Shown piece after piece: positions 53,757 through 61,844 of a stretch of 64,000 nucleotides of DNA (position 1 is its first letter; every line of letters begins with the position of its first letter). The notes beneath the pieces were generated by a model. The model did no database searches, was not told where the DNA came from, and saw nothing but the letters and a program-made list of their open reading frames with translations. A program made the translations under genes and the position numbers. Location of the stretch: the sequence record MT135025.1; one strand, given 5' to 3'.

Positions 53757-53835
53757 TGAGGCGGAAAAATTCCGCATCATCTTAGTAGAATTAGTAGTTT
53801 TAGTGAAGTTAGTAATATTAGGAGTATTAGAATGA
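53757..53835. repeat. hairpin plus 6x9-bp TTAG array, copy 2
   Basis: TTAG at 53782,53791,53800,53809,53818,53827; 56 bp identical to 4061-4116. Confidence 0.9.
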
Positions 53836-54527
53836 AGAAGCTCGTACTTGTAGCTGCCGCGGCTGTAGCTCTTGCCGGATGTGGTGATGTGCCACGTCTG
53901 GAAACTAAGACAGACAAGAAATTCACCACTGTTAATGCAGTCGTGAACAAAAAAGAGCGTGAAATGATTAACTACTGGATGGCAGATGCTGACGGTAGTA
54001 ACTATCTTTACAACAAGCTTTGGACTGCTCTTGCTACTCGTAACAAATACGGTTCTAATGCTGTGCGTCGTTCAGATGATGAAGTTCCGTTCTGTGATGT
54101 CATTGTAGCCCTTGCTAAATCTGAAGAAGATATTCGAAGCACGTACGAGCGCACATTTAATAATCAGTGGCGAACTCAATACGGAATTAGTCTTAATCAG
54201 CAATGTGGCTATACTCCACCAGAAACACTCGAAGAGCAAGCAGAGCGCGTTGAGAAACTTGAAATGCAAGCTGATTTGAAAAAGCGTGAGCAACAAGCAC
54301 AGAGTATTGAAACGCTTGATGACGTTGCCGACGCGACGACTGAGCTACTTGATCCGCATGAGTACGACTATCTGATCGAATCGGCACGCGAGTGTAATCG
54401 AGCCAAAACCAAATTGCTTGAACTAACGCAAGCAGGCAAACCTTTGACACAAGCTGACGGCTCAGATGCACGTAAGCTAATTATCGAATGCAAAATGCAT
54501 AAACTTGAAGTTGAATTGAATAAGTGA
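53832..54527 (+). CDS. putative lipoprotein
   Basis: MKKLVLVAAAAVALAG|C lipobox; AGGAG SD lies inside the TTAG array. Confidence 0.7.
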   Translation: MKKLVLVAAAAVALAGCGDVPRLETKTDKKFTTVNAVVNKKEREMINYWMADADGSNYLYNKLWTALATRNKYGSNAVRRSDDEVPFCDVIVALAKSEEDIRSTYERTFNNQWRTQYGISLNQQCGYTPPETLEEQAERVEKLEMQADLKKREQQAQSIETLDDVADATTELLDPHEYDYLIESARECNRAKTKLLELTQAGKPLTQADGSDARKLIIECKMHKLEVELNK

Positions 54528-54534
54528 GAAAAAC

Positions 54535-55317
54535 ATGTTGAGAACAAATATTGCGATTGAAGAACTGAAAATCCGAATGCATCCGTTCGATCAAGTTGCG
54601 AACGCAAACAACGACGATAGCTCAGTTCGCGACTGGCGGCAAATCCCTGAAGTTGCTAATGACAATATCTTGAAGAACTCGGTTCTACCGTCGTGGGTAA
54701 TTCGAGAGTTTCACTGGCGTGATATTTCATTCAATCAACCATCAATGGGTGATCTGCCCGTTGAGTACAAAACAGAAGCAGGTGAAATCGGTAAATGTCA
54801 ATCGCATTATCTCGGTGAACTTGATGATTGCAAGTTCTGGCGCCCTGATATTGTATCTTTGAATGCTCAATTCATTGATTCAAAAGACGTTGATAAAGCA
54901 CTTGCAGAATTGCAAGCCGTTGATGTGTTTGACGCTTCACAAGGATTCGCTGACGGTCGACCTGACCCGGTTAGTCACAATGAACACGGTATCACCGATG
55001 ATGAGCTTGAAGCTGCAATCGTCGAAGCTGAAATGGCAGCGGCTGTGGATGCTTTAAAAGTTGAGTCGCAATCGTTGTTCGATCCAGATCATGTTTATTA
55101 CATGAATGAAAAGTATTATATTATCGGTGACGACCCGTTTGACGAAAATTACTGCTATGCGTTGAATGCTGCAAAATACCCACAGCGTATTGCAAAATCC
55201 CAACTCGTAACCGATGAGCAATACAAAGAAGCTGAAGTTTTGAAGAATCAGTTCCCGCAGATGTGGACTGCTCAAGATTACGCAAAGCTTGCTAAGTTCA
55301 TTCGCAGCAAAAAGTAG
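54535..55317 (+). CDS. hypothetical acidic protein
   Basis: 260 aa ORF. Confidence 0.7.
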   Translation: MLRTNIAIEELKIRMHPFDQVANANNDDSSVRDWRQIPEVANDNILKNSVLPSWVIREFHWRDISFNQPSMGDLPVEYKTEAGEIGKCQSHYLGELDDCKFWRPDIVSLNAQFIDSKDVDKALAELQAVDVFDASQGFADGRPDPVSHNEHGITDDELEAAIVEAEMAAAVDALKVESQSLFDPDHVYYMNEKYYIIGDDPFDENYCYALNAAKYPQRIAKSQLVTDEQYKEAEVLKNQFPQMWTAQDYAKLAKFIRSKK

Positions 55318-55346
55318 TTTCCGATGCGGGTTGTTACGACATCCCG

Positions 55347-55354
55347 CATAAATA
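55347..55354 (+). promoter_or_regulatory. T4-type late promoter (CATAAATA) overlapping a hairpin
   Basis: One mismatch to TATAAATA; stem ATGCGGG/CCCGCAT at 55324-55349. Confidence 0.55.
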
Positions 55355-55386
55355 GTTCTATATGGACTAACAAGGAAATTACGACA

Positions 55387-55917
55387 ATGCCAACTCCTAC
55401 AACAGGTGCGATTTCAATCGGTACCGTTCGTGATTATTTCAGTAGAACCGGCGCTGCTTCATTGTCTCAGTACTACAGAGGCGGCGGTATTGTTCCTGAT
55501 ATTACTGAAAATGCTCACGTACCAACTTCAGGCGCAATTAGCTTGAATGACTTGCGCGGTGTATATCGCTTGTCAACGTATACGACATCATTTACGACAA
55601 CATACAACACCACTGTATCAACATCGAATACGACTTCGCGTAGTACGTCAAGAAGTACAACTAGAAGTACTGCATACAGTACAACTCGTTCGACTTCATA
55701 TACCACGACATACAACACGTCTGTTACTACGTCAGTAACGAAAGGTTCGTATACAACGACATACGCAACATCACGTGCCACGACTCGTTCAACTGCTTAT
55801 GACACAACACGTTCAACCGCTTATACGTCTACATGGACGACATCGTGGACAACGACATACAACACAACGTATTCAACATCAAACACAACCTCGCGAAGCA
55901 CGCAAGTTGCAGTTTAA
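55387..55917 (+). CDS. Ser/Thr tetrapeptide-repeat protein with N-terminal virion-type module
   Basis: AAGGA SD; N-term GAIS...SLSQYYRGGG.VP...VPTSGAISLNDLRG; C-terminal 114 aa with 72 Ser/Thr by manual count. Confidence 0.8.
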   Translation: MPTPTTGAISIGTVRDYFSRTGAASLSQYYRGGGIVPDITENAHVPTSGAISLNDLRGVYRLSTYTTSFTTTYNTTVSTSNTTSRSTSRSTTRSTAYSTTRSTSYTTTYNTSVTTSVTKGSYTTTYATSRATTRSTAYDTTRSTAYTSTWTTSWTTTYNTTYSTSNTTSRSTQVAV

Positions 55918-55929
55918 CAGGGTTAAATT

Positions 55930-56148
55930 ATGAGCTACAATGAAGAACACGAGAGCCGAATCAACGAGCTTGAGAACAAGGTTTCAAAGCTTGAGTTGAT
56001 AATTGAAAATCTGGTTGAGTCAATGACTTCGAACAGCGAAGCTATTATCGAACATATTGCATCACTTGAGACCGAGAGAGATTCGATTCTTGCATCATAT
56101 GATGACAAACTTAATGAGATCGTGACCAAATATGAACCCAAGCAATAG
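55930..56148 (+). CDS. small coiled-coil protein
   Basis: heptad pattern RINELENKVSKLELIIENL. Confidence 0.65.
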   Translation: MSYNEEHESRINELENKVSKLELIIENLVESMTSNSEAIIEHIASLETERDSILASYDDKLNEIVTKYEPKQ

Positions 56149-56986
56149 AGAAATGACTGGGTTCAATAACATTTCTCGCATCGGTAAGTTGAAATTACAA
56201 GCCGATGCAGACAACGTCCGTGCCATGTGTATGGACGTTGTTCGTTTATTGAACTCCAAAAATATACCATCTAACTTCGACATCAATCATAATGACGGTG
56301 GTAACATCGGCGTGCATGAATGGGTGTCACAAATCCGCTTCATTCACTTGAAATACATGAACGTTAATTTCCAAACGAAGATTTTCAAGCATGCCTATCA
56401 TAACACTGAAAACGTCGTTGACTATTTTGACACGTTCAAACATTCTGACAAATATCATCTATCAGCGAAGCCTAGATTTTTAGAATATGAAAACGTCGTA
56501 TTTCTATGTGGATCGAATGTACTTGAATTGGCAATTGACTTTGACAAGATTGATACGCTGGTCGAACAATATCCCGATTTAGTGATCAAACCTCACCCGA
56601 TTACGACGCTGTATTACATTAATATGCTTAAAACTCGATATGGATCGAAGCGCGTGCTTTCTCAGAAGATCAGCGGTGTTGATGTTCTTAAATCTGCTAA
56701 ACGTGTTTGGCTGCCTTCAACGTCTGAGTTCTGGTTTAGTGCCTTGAACTACGACAAAGAAATCGGGTTTATCTCTAAAGATGGTTTCTGTGGAACGTAC
56801 ACGTCAATCATCAACGCAGTATGGGAATTGCATGAAGAAACCGGTGAGCCATTGAAAGATATTGTGAATAAAATTATATCGTCACCTTACTCAGGTCTGT
56901 ATGGTAGTATGGCAGACTTTGAAGAGCATCACGAGAAATACTGTAATGTGATTCTGGAACTAGGGGGTAATTTCGATAATGTATGA
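56132..56986 (+). CDS. putative GT-B-like transferase (KpsC/KpsS-type C-terminal motif)
   Basis: LVIKPHP, SGVDVLKSAKRV...STSE.WF.AL..DKEI pattern; family call tentative. Confidence 0.4.
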   Translation: MNPSNREMTGFNNISRIGKLKLQADADNVRAMCMDVVRLLNSKNIPSNFDINHNDGGNIGVHEWVSQIRFIHLKYMNVNFQTKIFKHAYHNTENVVDYFDTFKHSDKYHLSAKPRFLEYENVVFLCGSNVLELAIDFDKIDTLVEQYPDLVIKPHPITTLYYINMLKTRYGSKRVLSQKISGVDVLKSAKRVWLPSTSEFWFSALNYDKEIGFISKDGFCGTYTSIINAVWELHEETGEPLKDIVNKIISSPYSGLYGSMADFEEHHEKYCNVILELGGNFDNV

Positions 56987-57611
56987 TTATGTAATTCACA
57001 CTTCGATTAGTGACAAAAGTCAGTTAAACCAACTAGCAATGTTTGTCGGGTCTTTCATCGAGACACACAAAAAAGGTCGCGTGGTCTGCGTGACGGATCT
57101 TGAACTTGATTTCACGATGCCTCGACTGACATTTGAGAAAAAACTGCCAGACGAGTACGTTTTCATTTCAGTTGACAATCTATTTTTGCAAAAAACATAC
57201 GGCGTTGTTAGCTACATTGACAGTGGTACTTGGCGATGTACTTGGCAAAAGAATGATCATGATGATTTCGTTATTAAAAAGCATGGTGAAAGAAGCGGAT
57301 TGATTCACCCTGATATTGCAATTGCAAATTACAATGTTTCCAGACATGGCGATCTCGACATGTATTACAACGCGCTTCGTTACATTGAGAACGCCATCAC
57401 GATCAACTGCAAAGACTTTGCTCCTGCTGCTGAGAATAAAATCAACAGCTTTTACACGCTTGTATTTCCATGGGAGATTTATTTTCACGTTATGATCACT
57501 TACCAAGAGTATATTGATTCTGAATACGTTGAGCGAGTTCGCGCTAACTGTCATAAGTTCGCACACTCGGTTTATTACAGAAAATCAGGGTTGTTGCGTG
57601 ATGGGTTATGA
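56979..57611 (+). CDS. hypothetical protein, possibly GT-A-like
   Basis: VVCVTD ... FISVDNLF resembles a degenerate DxD region; weak. Confidence 0.3.
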   Translation: MYDYVIHTSISDKSQLNQLAMFVGSFIETHKKGRVVCVTDLELDFTMPRLTFEKKLPDEYVFISVDNLFLQKTYGVVSYIDSGTWRCTWQKNDHDDFVIKKHGERSGLIHPDIAIANYNVSRHGDLDMYYNALRYIENAITINCKDFAPAAENKINSFYTLVFPWEIYFHVMITYQEYIDSEYVERVRANCHKFAHSVYYRKSGLLRDGL

Positions 57612-58284
57612 TGAGATAATTTTAGTATCTGGTCTTGATAGTTTAGTTCTATATGAATTTCTTGAACGAAAGCCACACCCTGTTTACTTTAAATGGGGTT
57701 TTGCTATCGACGAACTTGAAATGGCTTCTTTGCCTGAAGAAACAACGATCATAGAAATGCCAGATATTTTGCATTTGAGGCATGATCCGCATGAGTTCAA
57801 GACGCCAAGAAATCCCGATTTGATTGGTCGGAATACGTTGATGTTTAACTCAGTTTTTCATGCATTCAGACCGAACGTAATTTATCGCGGGATGTTGAAA
57901 GGTGATGATTTCTATTACGACGCATCGCCTACGCATTCAGATGAAATCGCAGCTATGTGGTCGAAAATGCTGAATAAAGAGTGTCGAATTGAACAACCGT
58001 TTAAAGACAAAACGAAACGTGACATAATGCAAATGGCAGTCGAATACGGTATTGATGCGAATTCATTGCAGCATTGTTACAATCGAGAACACAACTGCGG
58101 TCGATGTAGCAAGTGTGTGGATGCACATGTTAATTCTATGTACACCGACAACCCAGACATCATGTGGCTGAGACGAATAGTTAATGACTCAGGTATGACA
58201 TCAATGGCTAATCACATGTTTGGTGTTGATACAGTTGACAGAATAAAGGAATTTCTAGATGAATTTGATCGAACAGACCGCTGA
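57601..58284 (+). CDS. QueC-like PP-loop ATPase with Zn site
   Basis: LVSGLDS PP-loop, PFKDKTKRDIMQMA, HCYN...CGRCSKC. Confidence 0.7.
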   Translation: MGYDEIILVSGLDSLVLYEFLERKPHPVYFKWGFAIDELEMASLPEETTIIEMPDILHLRHDPHEFKTPRNPDLIGRNTLMFNSVFHAFRPNVIYRGMLKGDDFYYDASPTHSDEIAAMWSKMLNKECRIEQPFKDKTKRDIMQMAVEYGIDANSLQHCYNREHNCGRCSKCVDAHVNSMYTDNPDIMWLRRIVNDSGMTSMANHMFGVDTVDRIKEFLDEFDRTDR

Positions 58285-59152
58285 TAAATTTGAGCATAGT
58301 TACCGAGAAGACGTTCAAGGCGTACAGTGGTATTTCGGTAGTCGAACGCATGATTTTTATCTGTATGGAATAGACTCTCTTATTGATAAAGTCAAAGACT
58401 GTGATTTTATTGAAATCAAGCATGTTCAAGAGGGTACGCTGGTTAAACGAGGCGAAGCTGCGGTCACGGTTACGATTACAGATCATAGTCGTATCGCATA
58501 TGGGAACATGATTGAAACATTGTTGTACAATGAGTTGTGGTATTCGAGCACGGTCGGTACGATTTTACACCGTTGTCTTGATGTGTTGCATGAAAACGGC
58601 TATGACGCTCGTTCAGCATACCCTCAAATCGGACGGGCGAGTTCAACGCCAGAACAGTCAGCTAAAGCAAGGGATGTGTTCGCACGTATATTTTATCAAT
58701 CGTCGAATGAGAAAATACCCGTTGCGATGCACAGTGATATTTTAATCAACGGTGAGGAATATTGCATGGAACATTATAACGGCATCATGATTGATACTTT
58801 CGATAAGCAAGCTTGCATTGACTTGATCAACAAGAAAGACTTTCGAGGGACTGTGATGGTTGACTCTCAGCCAATAATTGAAACAATTGAGAAAGTTCTA
58901 GCTGAAACAAAATGCTTTGTTGCACAAGCTGAAAGTGTTACACTCGATGAGTGGATAGAGATAGTGCGACATTTTAAAGGTAATAAGCGAATTTTCTACG
59001 GGATTGGTAGCTTTGCATTTAGCAATATATCACGAGACACATTTGGTTTGATTTACAAAGTGTGTGCAGTTAAGAAAAACGACAACTGGATCGGAGTTTC
59101 AAAGATGACGACAGGTAAACAAACATCGGCTGGTTATAAGGTTATAGGTTAG
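58259..59152 (+). CDS. divergent nicotinate/nicotinamide phosphoribosyltransferase-fold protein
   Basis: ADKF, EGTLV..GE..V.V, ETLL.N..WY.STVGT, MHS, IDTFD, VDS, YGIGS, IYKVCAV, SK.T.GK.T.AG. Confidence 0.6.
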   Translation: MNLIEQTADKFEHSYREDVQGVQWYFGSRTHDFYLYGIDSLIDKVKDCDFIEIKHVQEGTLVKRGEAAVTVTITDHSRIAYGNMIETLLYNELWYSSTVGTILHRCLDVLHENGYDARSAYPQIGRASSTPEQSAKARDVFARIFYQSSNEKIPVAMHSDILINGEEYCMEHYNGIMIDTFDKQACIDLINKKDFRGTVMVDSQPIIETIEKVLAETKCFVAQAESVTLDEWIEIVRHFKGNKRIFYGIGSFAFSNISRDTFGLIYKVCAVKKNDNWIGVSKMTTGKQTSAGYKVIG

Positions 59153-59154
59153 TT

Positions 59155-60144
59155 ATGAATTATTGTATAGCGCCGTTTACATCGCCGTCTATTACGCCAG
59201 ACGGTTTTAAAATTTGCAGCATGCCAGGTCAGAAAGTATACCCTGATATTTCATTCTGGAATAGTGATGAAGTGATCAAAATTCGCGAACAGATTATCGC
59301 TGGTGAAATTCCTGAATCGTGCAAGGCATGTCGTAGTATGCGTGACGGGTTGATTGTGTCAAAAGAAAAACCAACTGATACTCATGTTGACTTGAATTTC
59401 AAAGCTCTTTACATTGCGCGGTCGAACAAGTGTGAATATGCTTGTGAAATGTGCAGTTCATCAATCTCACATAGCTATGACAAGAAATACAATGACGGTA
59501 AGTTGGGGATTATTGAGAATGACTTTGATGTTATTCCGTATCTGCACGAAACACAAGCCGTTGCTATTTCGGGCGGGAACCCTGTCATTGACAAAAAGGT
59601 TGCAGAGATTCTTGAGAATCTAGACCCTGACGTGGTCGAACATTTCATCATTACATCAAACGGGACAGTCTTTCCAGACAGATTCTTGAATGCAATTAAG
59701 CGATTGAAATGTGACGCGACTTTGATATTCTCTATGGACGGACCGAAAGAGTTTAATGAAGTGGTTCGATCTGGTGCGAAGCAAGAGAGAATCTATCGCA
59801 CCATTAATCGAGTTCTTGACGAGATTGAAGATTACCCAAACTTGCATGTGGCAATTGAGTATACTTTCACGAATAAGTCAATTCATCACTACGTTGATTT
59901 GTATGATGAAATGCTCTTCGAGATCAACCCGAAGCATTTGAAAAACAACTCAGTTAAAGTGATTGCGAATATGTGTACATACCCGCATCACCTTAGCGTT
60001 ACAACTGTTCCCAAATCCGTCATTGATGACATATTGTTCAATCAGTTGCCGTATTTGAGACAGCAACCCAGCCCATTGTCAAATCAATTCAAACTTGGCT
60101 ATGATAAGTTTTTGACTCAGTATCACAACAGCGTGATTATGTGA
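59155..60144 (+). CDS. radical SAM protein with N-terminal Cys-rich (twitch-like) domain
   Basis: CxxxCxxC = CEYACEMC; GGNP, ITSNGT, FSMDG; N-term YCIAPF...C...WNS...IR..I..GE.P.SCKAC. Confidence 0.85.
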   Translation: MNYCIAPFTSPSITPDGFKICSMPGQKVYPDISFWNSDEVIKIREQIIAGEIPESCKACRSMRDGLIVSKEKPTDTHVDLNFKALYIARSNKCEYACEMCSSSISHSYDKKYNDGKLGIIENDFDVIPYLHETQAVAISGGNPVIDKKVAEILENLDPDVVEHFIITSNGTVFPDRFLNAIKRLKCDATLIFSMDGPKEFNEVVRSGAKQERIYRTINRVLDEIEDYPNLHVAIEYTFTNKSIHHYVDLYDEMLFEINPKHLKNNSVKVIANMCTYPHHLSVTTVPKSVIDDILFNQLPYLRQQPSPLSNQFKLGYDKFLTQYHNSVIM

Positions 60145-61261
60145 TCAGATCATACGCTTTGATATGTGAGTAAAACTCTGGACACGCAGACGATAAATTA
60201 GTTTTCGTCTTCGTGTCTATTCTTTTGTTAAGAACAAAGAATTCAGGGTTGAATTTACAAACACTGTGTTCCAGAGTAAGACATTCAGCAACGTGCTTGA
60301 ATGGTCTAGCCAAATCCTCACGCCCATCTTTTAAATACGCTTCTTCTTTCACTTTGAATCTTGATAATAGCTGGTCTCGAAATGCAACTGGAATGTTGTA
60401 AATTGAGTATGGATTATCAGGCTCACCGACGACATGTACAGACAAACGTACACGTTTACCATCATAAAGCGAATCAAAATCTGAAACCAATGTTTCAAGA
60501 TGTTCAAGAGTCACGTTTGACACGGTCGCAGTGATAACTACATCAAAGTGTTGCTTGATGACTTCAATGTTTGATTTGACTTTCTTGATGTCTGCAAACA
60601 ATCGAATATAATCTTGGTATTCTCGTAGACCGTCGATTGATACGAACACCGTTGATGCATTAGCTTCTTTAAGCGATTTGATGAGATCTGAGCCATCGGC
60701 TAACACTAGTGATGAGCCATTCGTGAAAATATTCACTGCGCCTTTAATGTCGCCTACGTTGCGAAGAACTTCAGGAGCATTTGACGAGCGGGTAATTTCA
60801 CCGCCTAGAATTGTCAATGACGAAAGTCCTTTGCTGATTGTGTTGATTGTCGTACTCAAATCATTGAATCGAGTACTTGAATCTTCTTCATTGAACAATC
60901 TAGCCTTCAAGTCTGATAATTTGCTGTAGCAGTAACGACAAGCTTGATTACATTCATTACTAGGGAATACTTGTAGCCAGCGAACTGAATCAGCGGGCAT
61001 AATAGGTGAAACTTCAGAATCGTGTTCTGTTAGACGCTGTGGGTCATTATCAGTAATGCACATTTGACATGCCTTTGACAGCTTGCTCATGTCGTGGTTT
61101 AGCATTGCTTCACGATAAGCGACAAGCTTTTCATCATTCCAAGCGTCTGCTAGTGTTTTTTCATCAGTAAACCATTCATAATCAGCCGAACAGCAAAACG
61201 TAATTTGATTGTTTGCTCGTGTGATGAACTGCTTGAACGGCATATAACATAGTGGTTTCAT
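60137..61261 (-). CDS. radical SAM protein with N-terminal Cys-rich (twitch-like) domain
   Basis: CxxxCxxC = CNQACRYC; LGGE, FTNGS, VSIDG...YIR; N-term LCYMPF...CC...AWN...YR..ML....CQMC. Confidence 0.85.
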   Translation of the reverse strand: MKPLCYMPFKQFITRANNQITFCCSADYEWFTDEKTLADAWNDEKLVAYREAMLNHDMSKLSKACQMCITDNDPQRLTEHDSEVSPIMPADSVRWLQVFPSNECNQACRYCYSKLSDLKARLFNEEDSSTRFNDLSTTINTISKGLSSLTILGGEITRSSNAPEVLRNVGDIKGAVNIFTNGSSLVLADGSDLIKSLKEANASTVFVSIDGLREYQDYIRLFADIKKVKSNIEVIKQHFDVVITATVSNVTLEHLETLVSDFDSLYDGKRVRLSVHVVGEPDNPYSIYNIPVAFRDQLLSRFKVKEEAYLKDGREDLARPFKHVAECLTLEHSVCKFNPEFFVLNKRIDTKTKTNLSSACPEFYSHIKAYDLIT

Positions 61262-61271
61262 GTTTCTGTCC

Positions 61272-61844
61272 TTAGTTAAAAATGCTACTTGTATATATAG
61301 CAGTCTTCAGGGCATTGAAATGATCGTCAACTCTATTCACGTGTATGCATTCAATGTCAAATCTTTCTTGGATTTCTCGGATGTTGTCTAGCGAGTCGTC
61401 GATGAAGTATTTCACCTCATGCAGTTCACACAGCTTCTCGACATACTTTGCCTTCGAGTCGAAGTACTCAATCGAAATCACCTCACTTATCATCCCTGGG
61501 AATAACGCATTTAGATTATACACGCGATTTGACCATGAAGTTCTACTCATGCTGAACTTGGTTAGTGCAATGATGTTATATCGGTCTGAGAGTTCGCGTA
61601 ACGCATCGTAAGCGTCTTCATATGCGGGTATGTACTTTGCACACTCATGTTCATTGTATGCGCCTATAAGCTTTCCTAGTTGCATGTCACTCACGTTAAT
61701 AAATAAAGAGCGTGCATCGGTATCAGTATTTGAACCGTTGATATTCAAATTATCAAGCATGCCTAATTGCATCATGAAGAATGGCAAGTTGGCTTTCCAG
61801 TTAAGCAAAACCCCGTCTACATCTATGATGATCGTCTTTTTCAT
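61272..61844 (-). CDS. HAD-like protein, T4 gp30.2-like
   Basis: KTIIIDVDGVLLNW, IALTK, R..NL..LFP, FIDD..DNI. Confidence 0.7.
   Translation of the reverse strand: MKKTIIIDVDGVLLNWKANLPFFMMQLGMLDNLNINGSNTDTDARSLFINVSDMQLGKLIGAYNEHECAKYIPAYEDAYDALRELSDRYNIIALTKFSMSRTSWSNRVYNLNALFPGMISEVISIEYFDSKAKYVEKLCELHEVKYFIDDSLDNIREIQERFDIECIHVNRVDDHFNALKTAIYTSSIFN

Follow-up and report, generated by a model that had tools for sequence, protein, structure and literature searches.

This study concerns a stretch of 64,000 nucleotides from sequence record MT135025.1 (Vibrio phage V07), hereafter referred to as the window, and within it a gene encoding a 176-amino-acid (aa) protein unusually rich in serine and threonine. 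The V07 protein matches phrog_30374, a family of unknown function (E 3.5e-98), and its ortholog KVP40.0254 is recorded as a 'hypothetical protein'. The 4 kb of the window used as a query are 100% identical to Vibrio phage V07, and identity to KVP40, phi-pp2, and other Schizotequatrovirus phages is 95.5-97.5%. The protein begins with a short N-terminal module (N-module), continues as two arms built of four-residue units (tetrads) which meet at a Lys-Gly turn, and is followed by genes encoding a small coiled-coil protein and a 284-aa protein, here called the partner (Table 1). The arms are best read as the two strands of an antiparallel β-ribbon forming a stalk, and we consider with moderate confidence that the V07 protein is a late, fibre-associated stalk protein which is modified or assembled by its partner.

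Table 1. Features of the tetrad gene and its immediate surroundings; positions are those of the window.
Feature	Position	Strand	Description
Coding sequence, 176 aa + stop	55387..55917	+	KVP40.0254 ortholog, Vibrio phage V07; member of phrog_30374
N-module, residues 1-62	55387..55572	+	Two SGAIS-type motifs around SLSxYYRGGxxVP; ends YRL
Arm 1, residues 63-118	55573..55740	+	14 tetrads, bulky residue at position 3
Turn K119-G120	55741..55746	+	Phase moves one residue here
Arm 2, residues 121-176	55747..55914	+	14 tetrads, bulky residue at position 4
Shine-Dalgarno sequence AAGGAAA	55372..55378	+	8 nt before ATG 55387
Leader RNA structure	55314..55382	+	9-bp outer helix, 55314-55322 with 55374-55382
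T4-type late-promoter-like box, 7/8	55347..55354	+	C at -13; predicted start near 55360
72-aa coiled-coil protein	55930..56148	+	Homolog of the extension that precedes the partner in loci with fused genes (evidence from L010, L011, L025, and L027)
284-aa partner protein (p284), enzyme-like	56132..56986	+	Nine homologs, 20-73% identity

Periodicity and cross-strand complementarity of the arms

A preliminary description of this DNA, made from the letters alone, had divided the protein into tetrads on both sides of a turn, and this division proved correct: the translation is as quoted there and comprises 14 tetrads, a Lys-Gly turn, and 14 tetrads in shifted phase. All 14 tetrads of arm 1 carry a residue other than Ser or Thr at position 3. 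When residues are scored as Ser/Thr or other, the power at period 4 is 2.70, a value never reached by shuffled sequences (maximum 1.98, n=10,000), and the best 48-aa segment attains 3.08, which was equaled in 0 of 300 shuffles of the whole protein; 4 is the only significant period in the V07 protein. Serine and threonine together account for 48% of the protein, residues 63-176 comprising 48 Thr, 24 Ser, 11 Tyr, 8 Arg, and one Gly. That the periodicity resides in the protein and not in a simple DNA tandem repeat, as had also been proposed, was confirmed: Tandem Repeats Finder identified only two short arrays of 1.9 copies each, and the Ser and Thr codons are mixed. Since the DNA contains no long repeat array, the period is carried by the protein. 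A search with the sequence of the arms only yielded no match at E≤0.01.

Four orthologs were compared, namely those of V07 (176 aa), QD01 (identical in length in VS2; 168 aa), 6E35.1a (177 aa), and D479 (170 aa). The N-modules of the ortholog lineages are 49-92% identical to that of V07, the arms are too diverged for reliable alignment, and the tips differ in sequence, being KG, GCGKGVCG (6E35.1a), and CWSSGKSGSC (D479). When the arms of the V07 protein are placed antiparallel and centred on the turn (i + j = 239), cationic and aromatic residues face each other across the strands in 8 pairs; the turn-centred register gives 9 such pairs in QD01, 12 in 6E35.1a, and 13 in D479, with no aromatic-aromatic or cation-cation pair in any of the four orthologs. 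Permutation tests in which the aromatic and cationic residues were shuffled within arm 2 gave P values of 0.0021, 0.0018, 0.0004, and 0.0010, respectively. Registers shifted by 4, 8, or 12 show equal concordance of bulky and small residues, but they contain 2-8 pairs of like residues. Bulky/small concordance cannot set the register, as registers four residues apart score alike, and the cation-aromatic test alone discriminates between them.

In all four orthologs, this register places the C-terminal residue opposite the final residue of the motif that ends the module (YRLS, MRLT, or YRQT), which is S63 in V07; the arms therefore stay equal in every ortholog despite the varying total length. A global alignment of the V07 and QD01 proteins contains exactly two gaps of 4 residues each, one per arm. 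The residue V113 of V07, which faces Y126, is replaced by Arg in all other close KVP40-type phages. The long β-hairpin or ribbon with one Ser/Thr face that had been suggested for this protein is thus supported by equal arms and by Arg-aromatic complementarity in four orthologs, and further by the single tetrad insertion or deletion per arm between V07 and QD01 and by a globular insert at the tip in some relatives. Cysteine pairs of 6E35.1a and D479 were tried as register markers and rejected, because their position sums are off register (239 versus 240 and 229 versus 231, respectively); we read them as closing the tip loop.

The nucleotide sequence of the arms (55573-55914) is a local hot spot of divergence, mostly synonymous. 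In comparisons of V07 with its close relatives, DNA identity is 84.5-88.6% in the arms, 96-99.5% in the upstream region and module, 98-99.5% upstream, and 95-98% downstream, and the lowest 100-nt bin (55700-55799) falls to a minimum pairwise identity of 67%. The 114 arm codons show 21-32 synonymous and 8-12 non-synonymous differences, and the 62 module codons 1-5 and 0-1, respectively. The arms change fast, and their pattern is kept. Recombination with diverged alleles, tetrad exchange, or a higher local mutation rate could account for the hot spot.

Structure prediction and relatives of the proposed stalk

In a single-sequence AlphaFold2 model of the V07 protein (mean pLDDT 50), strands 98-118 and 121-137 flank residues 119-120. 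A second run used an alignment of 42 sequences which did not include the tetrad orthologs; it resolved the module, with residues 1-60 folding at pLDDT 90-97, and lost the arms because the unrelated C-terminal domains in the alignment add noise. In the AlphaFold monomer check put forward in the preliminary description, the strands thus break at 119-120, and the model of the arms is of low confidence. A Foldseek search of the PDB with the single-sequence model returned only the pore hairpins of gasdermin, MACPF, and CDC proteins (best E 0.009, not significant). These share with the V07 model two very long antiparallel strands; however, pore hairpins span membranes by alternating hydrophobic with polar residues, whereas the V07 protein has no hydrophobic face. 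Taking standard β-strand geometry (~3.4 Å per residue), a ribbon of 56 residues per arm would measure roughly 19 nm if fully extended.

Searching with homologs of the downstream partner gene identified a 210-aa protein (L028:4016-4648) which lacks the N-module and consists of an arm, a globular insert of ~70 aa, and a second arm. In its best register, residue 9 lies opposite the C-terminus, and 11 pairs are complementary and 1 is like-like. The protein P0121 comprises the N-module, an arm, an insert homologous to that of the L028 protein, and a second arm, and the C-terminal half of a 692-aa protein of L027 is a long period-4 Ser/Thr region. A stalk able to carry a head at its tip would explain all three proteins. 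Period-4 power exceeds that of 300 of 300 shuffles in the proteins of V07, L028, and L027 and in gp043 of Caulobacter phage DCM; the exception is gp254 of Caulobacter phage Cr30, which is accompanied by a partner gene but shows no significant period 4.

Distribution and fold of the N-terminal module

The GAIS motifs flanking YYRGG..VP that had been noticed in the N-terminal part are present and are conserved in other proteins, and a profile search with this part alone, as had been recommended, was productive. With residues 1-63 as the query, a HMMER search of the full set of 1.84 billion representative proteins identified at least 930 protein clusters at E≤1e-3, 12 of them at E≤1e-10, most known only from metagenomes. 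The match nearly always corresponds to residues 1-60 of proteins of 150-660 aa, in which the module is joined to C-terminal parts that include Gly_rich_2, Calx-beta, PKD, and β-propeller domains. Among the best 150 module proteins, tetrad arms are found in P0006 only, and partly in P0121.

The predicted fold of the module matches 58-67 residues of BFVD entries (rmsd 1.7-2.7 Å, probability 1.0), in each case at the N-terminus. Two of these entries are labelled 'Receptor-recognising protein Gp38 domain-containing' and one 'phage tail protein'; a further one has a glycine-rich domain, and another is the VH7D protein encoded in the same genomic slot. Genes for module proteins immediately follow tail-fibre genes in Ralstonia phage YL1, Xanthomonas phage RTH11, L024, and L025, and in L013 the module lies within a 766-aa protein adjoining a 1158-aa fibre. 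Judged by its gene context, the module is most likely an attachment-type adaptor. Of the two roles previously suggested for it, that of a virion anchor fits both the distribution and the tail-fibre neighbours, whereas that of a leader peptide is not supported, since the module is a folded domain found on >900 proteins with large C-terminal domains.

In gp38 adhesins, a domain for attachment is located at the N-terminus and a variable domain at the C-terminus, and the gene is sometimes displaced (PMC3157838). The V07 module family has the same layout of conserved N-terminal and variable C-terminal parts, a likeness that is architectural only. Like gp38 of the T2/T6/S16 type (Straboviridae), V07-type proteins are small and modular, with a conserved N-terminal attachment part and a variable, low-complexity C-terminal part of unusual periodic structure, and in relatives the gene is located after that of the distal tail fibre; the gp38 gene itself can be displaced elsewhere in the genome (PMC3157838). 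Moreover, the BFVD proteins sharing the N-module carry Gp38-domain or glycine-rich C-terminal parts. In contrast to gp38, the C-terminal part of the V07 protein has a single Gly and reads as a hairpin of Ser/Thr tetrads, not as a glycine-rich sandwich, and the KVP40-type gene does not lie beside the fibre genes, its position after the distal long-tail-fibre gene being confined to relatives. The Pfam GP38 model matched neither the V07 protein nor its relatives (E≤0.01), and the fold search of the PDB did not return the S16 gp38 structure. Despite its gp38-like layout, the V07 protein is therefore not a gp38 family member.

The downstream coiled-coil and partner genes

The open reading frames (ORFs) of the coiled-coil and 284-aa proteins overlap by 17 nt in V07, and a single fused protein is encoded in L011 and L025. 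Homologs of both are found after the tetrad gene of QD01/VS2, 6E35.1a, and D479 and after the tetrad protein in L027 and L028. Altogether, partner homologs are encoded downstream in KVP40, QD01/VS2, 6E35.1a, D479, L011, L025, L027, L028, DCM, and Cr30. In the T7-like Caulobacter phage DCM (L029:4033-5546), the order is tail fibre, Thr-rich period-4 protein, partner, and pinholin, and in the T4-like Caulobacter phage Cr30 (L030:2394-4660), fibre-like protein, Thr/Tyr-rich protein, partner, and neck protein. Among cultured phages, the collection contains the 284-aa protein in 35 records of Vibrio phages, which according to the hit tables are apparently the 35 with the module protein, and in 9 records of Caulobacter phages. 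No partner gene accompanies module proteins whose C-terminal domains are of other kinds; the partner therefore belongs with the stalk rather than the module.

Invariant residues of p284 are G18, D50, K107, Y108, G127, N129, K153, H155, P156, T158, E199, S251, and G255, and the K-x-H-P motif is invariant in the nine homologs. A word-indexed search with the partner returned close orthologs only. A match to the glycosyltransferase family GT52 (E 5.4e-4) was obtained with one of six homologs at 19.7 bits versus a cut-off of 26.1 bits, and comparison of the partner profile with the PDB gave one weak match, KpsC (6mgb, E 0.45); both signals are located around the K-x-H-P motif. In L027, a GT8 glycosyltransferase gene adjoins the partner gene (E 4e-17). 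The invariant polar residues, the sub-threshold glycosyltransferase signals, and the L027 GT8 gene modestly favour modification over a chaperone role, and the partner would most likely O-glycosylate the Ser/Thr face of the stalk. The glycosylation of this face considered in the preliminary description is thus plausible, with indirect support from the conserved enzyme-like neighbour and the GT8 gene. The partner homolog of L028 is followed by a 275-aa ORF (L028:5524-6351) which looks sulfotransferase-like by eye and has no Pfam match.

Both the serine-rich repeat glycoproteins known from Gram-positive bacteria and the glycosylated mycobacteriophage virion proteins combine a Ser/Thr-rich surface segment with transferase-like genes alongside. 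The V07 locus resembles both in having a Ser/Thr-rich segment beside dedicated transferase-like genes. The V07 protein differs from them in the lack of homology (16 bits versus a cut-off of 650) and of secretion or anchoring signals, and in a strict structural periodicity as opposed to disordered repeats; its glycosylation is putative. An ice-binding role of the hydroxyl face, considered in the preliminary description, was not borne out. The Thr-rich ice-binding β-solenoids of insects and bacteria also build a flat Thr/Ser hydroxyl face from a short sequence period; however, they use T-x-T coils of 12-19 residues, whereas the V07 protein has period 4 only, in what reads as a two-stranded hairpin. 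No homology to these proteins and no family match were found, and the hosts of phages with V07-type tetrad proteins are Vibrio and Caulobacter.

Start site and leader RNA

The start codon is most likely ATG 55387, which is favoured because AAGGAAA is located 8 nt upstream. The start annotated in KVP40 RefSeq, corresponding to ATG 55324 (197 aa), is less likely; it has no ribosome-binding site and would take in the leader elements, so the KVP40 RefSeq gene (L001:8324-8917) probably begins 63 nt too early. The predicted folding energy of the 69-nt leader is -28.6 kcal/mol (z -5.0), a stability reached by 0 of 200 shuffles, and the outer helix persists in longer sequence context. The helix is predicted to sequester the Shine-Dalgarno sequence in read-through transcripts. 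The late-promoter-like box lies between the two strands of this helix, and the predicted transcript from ~55360 has no structure beyond chance (z 0.19). The 7-mer of the box occurs 5 times in the window versus 10.7 expected. The same leader architecture is found in QD01 (z -6.5), and 6E35.1a has a different hairpin which also covers the Shine-Dalgarno sequence (z -3.4).

The late-promoter consensus of T4-type phages has been described, position -13 being poorly conserved in KVP40 and other T4-like phages (PMC1524935; PMC2988020). The T4 genes e, soc, 49, and I-TevI have leaders that sequester the ribosome-binding site (RBS), which results in late-only translation (PMC3014915). Similarly, the predicted V07 helix covers the Shine-Dalgarno sequence, and a late transcript would lack the inhibitory strand. 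In contrast to the T4 genes, the V07 leader is known in silico only, its box has C at -13, and the slots of D479 and VH7D are without leader structure, although that of VH7D has a perfect late-promoter box. By analogy with the T4 genes, the V07-type leader points to late-only translation.

Annotation and surrounding genes

The gene has been treated unevenly in public records. The D479 record (L009:3001-3513) omits the 170-aa gene and has two small minus-strand ORFs called across the locus. In several records the product is named 'cell wall mannoprotein', a name that RAST assigns automatically on the basis of Ser/Thr composition only, and homology to yeast Tir or serine-rich repeat proteins was likewise rejected (NCBIfam serine-rich family, 16.2 bits versus a cut-off of 650). 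A Pfam scan of the 176-aa protein gave no family at E≤0.01. A whole-protein search of 5.8 billion proteins returned 3 matches only, every one through the N-module, and an exact look-up of six ortholog sequences found none in the protein collection. Record MT135025.1 itself is 349 kb long versus ~245 kb in close relatives, and the assembly may contain duplicated or concatenated sequence.

Upstream of the tetrad gene, KVP40-type phages encode a lipoprotein and an unknown 260-aa protein. The 231-aa protein at 53832-54527 has a lipoprotein signal (lipobox LAGC), and its N-terminus is weakly similar to Cor-type superinfection exclusion proteins. The block at 56979-61844, between the partner gene and nadV, is conserved in the four Vibrio phage lineages with the tetrad gene and absent from the VH7D lineage. 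Besides two twitch-domain radical SAM proteins (59155-60144 on the plus strand and 60137-61261 on the minus strand), it encodes an unknown protein of 210 aa, a PP-loop protein resembling QueC (57598-58284), an NAPRTase-like protein of 297 aa, and a HAD-like 30.2 homolog; the canonical queuosine-type gene set of KVP40-type phages is located elsewhere, separate from this block. In the VH7D lineage (L004:7332-8433), two genes replace everything from the tetrad gene through gene 30.2. The product of the first, which is preceded by the perfect late-promoter box, is 177 aa long, contains three SGxIS(L/M)xD repeats, and has a C-terminal domain of another kind; the second encodes a 167-aa protein which has a signal peptide and looks like an outer-membrane β-barrel.

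Discussion

The reading that we favour is that of a small modular protein which would be made late in infection and would sit on a virion fibre. Residues 1-62 would form a compact attachment-type module, comparable to the adaptors heading small proteins encoded after tail-fibre genes elsewhere, and residues 63-176 would fold back at K119-G120 into one two-stranded antiparallel β-ribbon of ~56 residues per arm. One face of this ribbon would present Arg or Lys opposite Tyr, Trp, or Phe at every second pair, a cation-aromatic ladder alternating with Thr/Ser pairs, and the other face would be almost purely Ser/Thr. The ribbon would act as a stalk, carrying a globular head at its tip in relatives and a bare turn or Cys-closed loop in the KVP40 type. 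The coiled-coil and 284-aa proteins, apparently encoded directly downstream wherever stalks occur, would constitute its dedicated partner and O-glycosylate the Ser/Thr face or, alternatively, serve as an assembly factor for the stalk. We can propose only tentatively that this is a previously undescribed architecture, in which phages as unrelated as Schizo-T4 Vibrio phages, T7-like Caulobacter phages, and uncultured marine phages would use a ~19 nm Arg-Tyr/Trp-laddered ribbon with an all-hydroxyl face to project a tip or head from their fibres, and in which a new, dedicated K-x-H-P enzyme family with its coiled coil would always accompany the ribbon and decorate its Ser/Thr face, drawing on a host nucleotide-sugar pool. 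The periodicity, the equal arms and their complementarity, the distribution and confident fold of the module, the gene pairing, and the leader RNA fold are results of the analysis; the ribbon fold, the location on the virion, late expression, and the activity of the partner are deductions from these results.

Several observations weigh against this reading. The four orthologs are related, and their permutation tests are hence not four independent tests. AlphaFold2 confidence in the arms is low (pLDDT ~50-69 in the single-sequence model, <50 with the alignment), and an isolated two-stranded ribbon of such length probably needs oligomerisation or a binding surface for stability. The module has no PDB match by sequence or fold search, and its attachment role is therefore deduced from gene context only. 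In KVP40-like genomes, the gene sits amid unknown and metabolic genes, away from the tail-fibre genes. The similarity of the partner to glycosyltransferases stays below every curated threshold. D479 has neither the late-promoter-like box nor the RNA structure, and the box of V07 departs from the consensus in its C at -13. Proteomic, transcriptomic, or structural data on the V07-type protein were not found in the literature searched, which yielded nothing relevant on the tetrad motif, on KVP40 virion proteomics or transcriptomics, or on Schizotequatrovirus cryo-EM.

Among the alternatives, the most credible, though still unlikely, retains the stalk as proposed and assigns to the 284-aa partner and its coiled coil the function of a folding or assembly chaperone without any modification. 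The constant position of the partner directly 3' of the stalk gene would suit such a function, as would its location, in several phages, within tail-fibre blocks that also encode tail assembly chaperones, the N-terminal coiled coil, either fused or present as a separate 72-aa protein, and the failure of the partner to reach any curated enzyme-family threshold. What argues for an enzyme is the retention, at 20-37% identity, of 13 invariant and mostly polar residues, including K-x-H-P-x-T, in an active-site-like set, together with the weak but concordant matches to two CMP-sugar transferase families around this motif and the adjacent GT8 gene in L027.

It is rather improbable that the V07 protein is a non-virion protein acting inside or at the infected cell, where it might serve superinfection exclusion, envelope binding, or the timing of lysis. 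Such a role would agree with the KVP40-type location, far from the fibre genes and beside lipoprotein and unknown genes in a block of early-type orientation, and the literature offered no virion proteome against which it could be compared. However, module or tetrad proteins are encoded within structural or fibre blocks in six unrelated phage contexts, the leader is of late-type design, and neither a signal peptide nor a membrane segment was detected in the V07 protein sequence.

A Ser/Thr region forming an intrinsically disordered, mucin-like spacer with no defined fold, so that the 'cell wall mannoprotein' label would reflect its composition, is more doubtful still. It would account for the 48% content of Ser and Thr, the low AlphaFold2 confidence in the arms, the weak compositional match to a serine-rich protein family, and the fast divergence of the arms between close relatives. 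It would leave without explanation a strict period, arms that are equal in every ortholog and complementary in one register only, insertions and deletions that are paired between the arms, and codon differences in the arms that are mostly synonymous; moreover, the RAST label is compositional and the NCBIfam score (16 bits) far from its 650-bit cut-off.

The preliminary description had also considered a multi-site precursor of polytheonamide type. A precursor of this kind, for a ribosomally synthesised and post-translationally modified peptide (RiPP), with the N-module as its leader and iterative modification by the nearby radical SAM enzymes, is very improbable. Two genes for twitch-domain radical SAM proteins, one for a QueC-like PP-loop protein, and one of phosphoribosyltransferase type do lie 1.7-5.3 kb downstream; four Vibrio phage lineages have them together with the tetrad gene, and the VH7D lineage, with its different C-terminal domain, lacks them. 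However, the radical SAM linkage is confined to Vibrio phages, no such gene being found beside the tetrad proteins of L025, L027, L028, DCM, and Cr30, the module is confidently folded and occurs on >900 proteins with large folded adhesion-type C-terminal domains, the arms are under structural constraints, and no Pfam or NCBIfam leader family (nitrile-hydratase-like or Nif11-like) was matched.

If the ribbon is true, the tetrad period together with complementary Arg and aromatic residues would represent a new and very simple rule encoding a rigid two-stranded stalk. Such a rule would be of interest for protein design and for reading the many Ser/Thr-rich 'low-complexity' phage ORFs that are mislabelled or skipped, of which the V07-type gene, omitted in one public record and called a 'mannoprotein' in others, is an example. 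It would also provide a name and a likely role for an N-module present in at least 930 protein clusters. The stalk-plus-partner pair would be a marker of fibre accessory proteins in uncultured phages and may reveal a new protein-glycosylation system in them.

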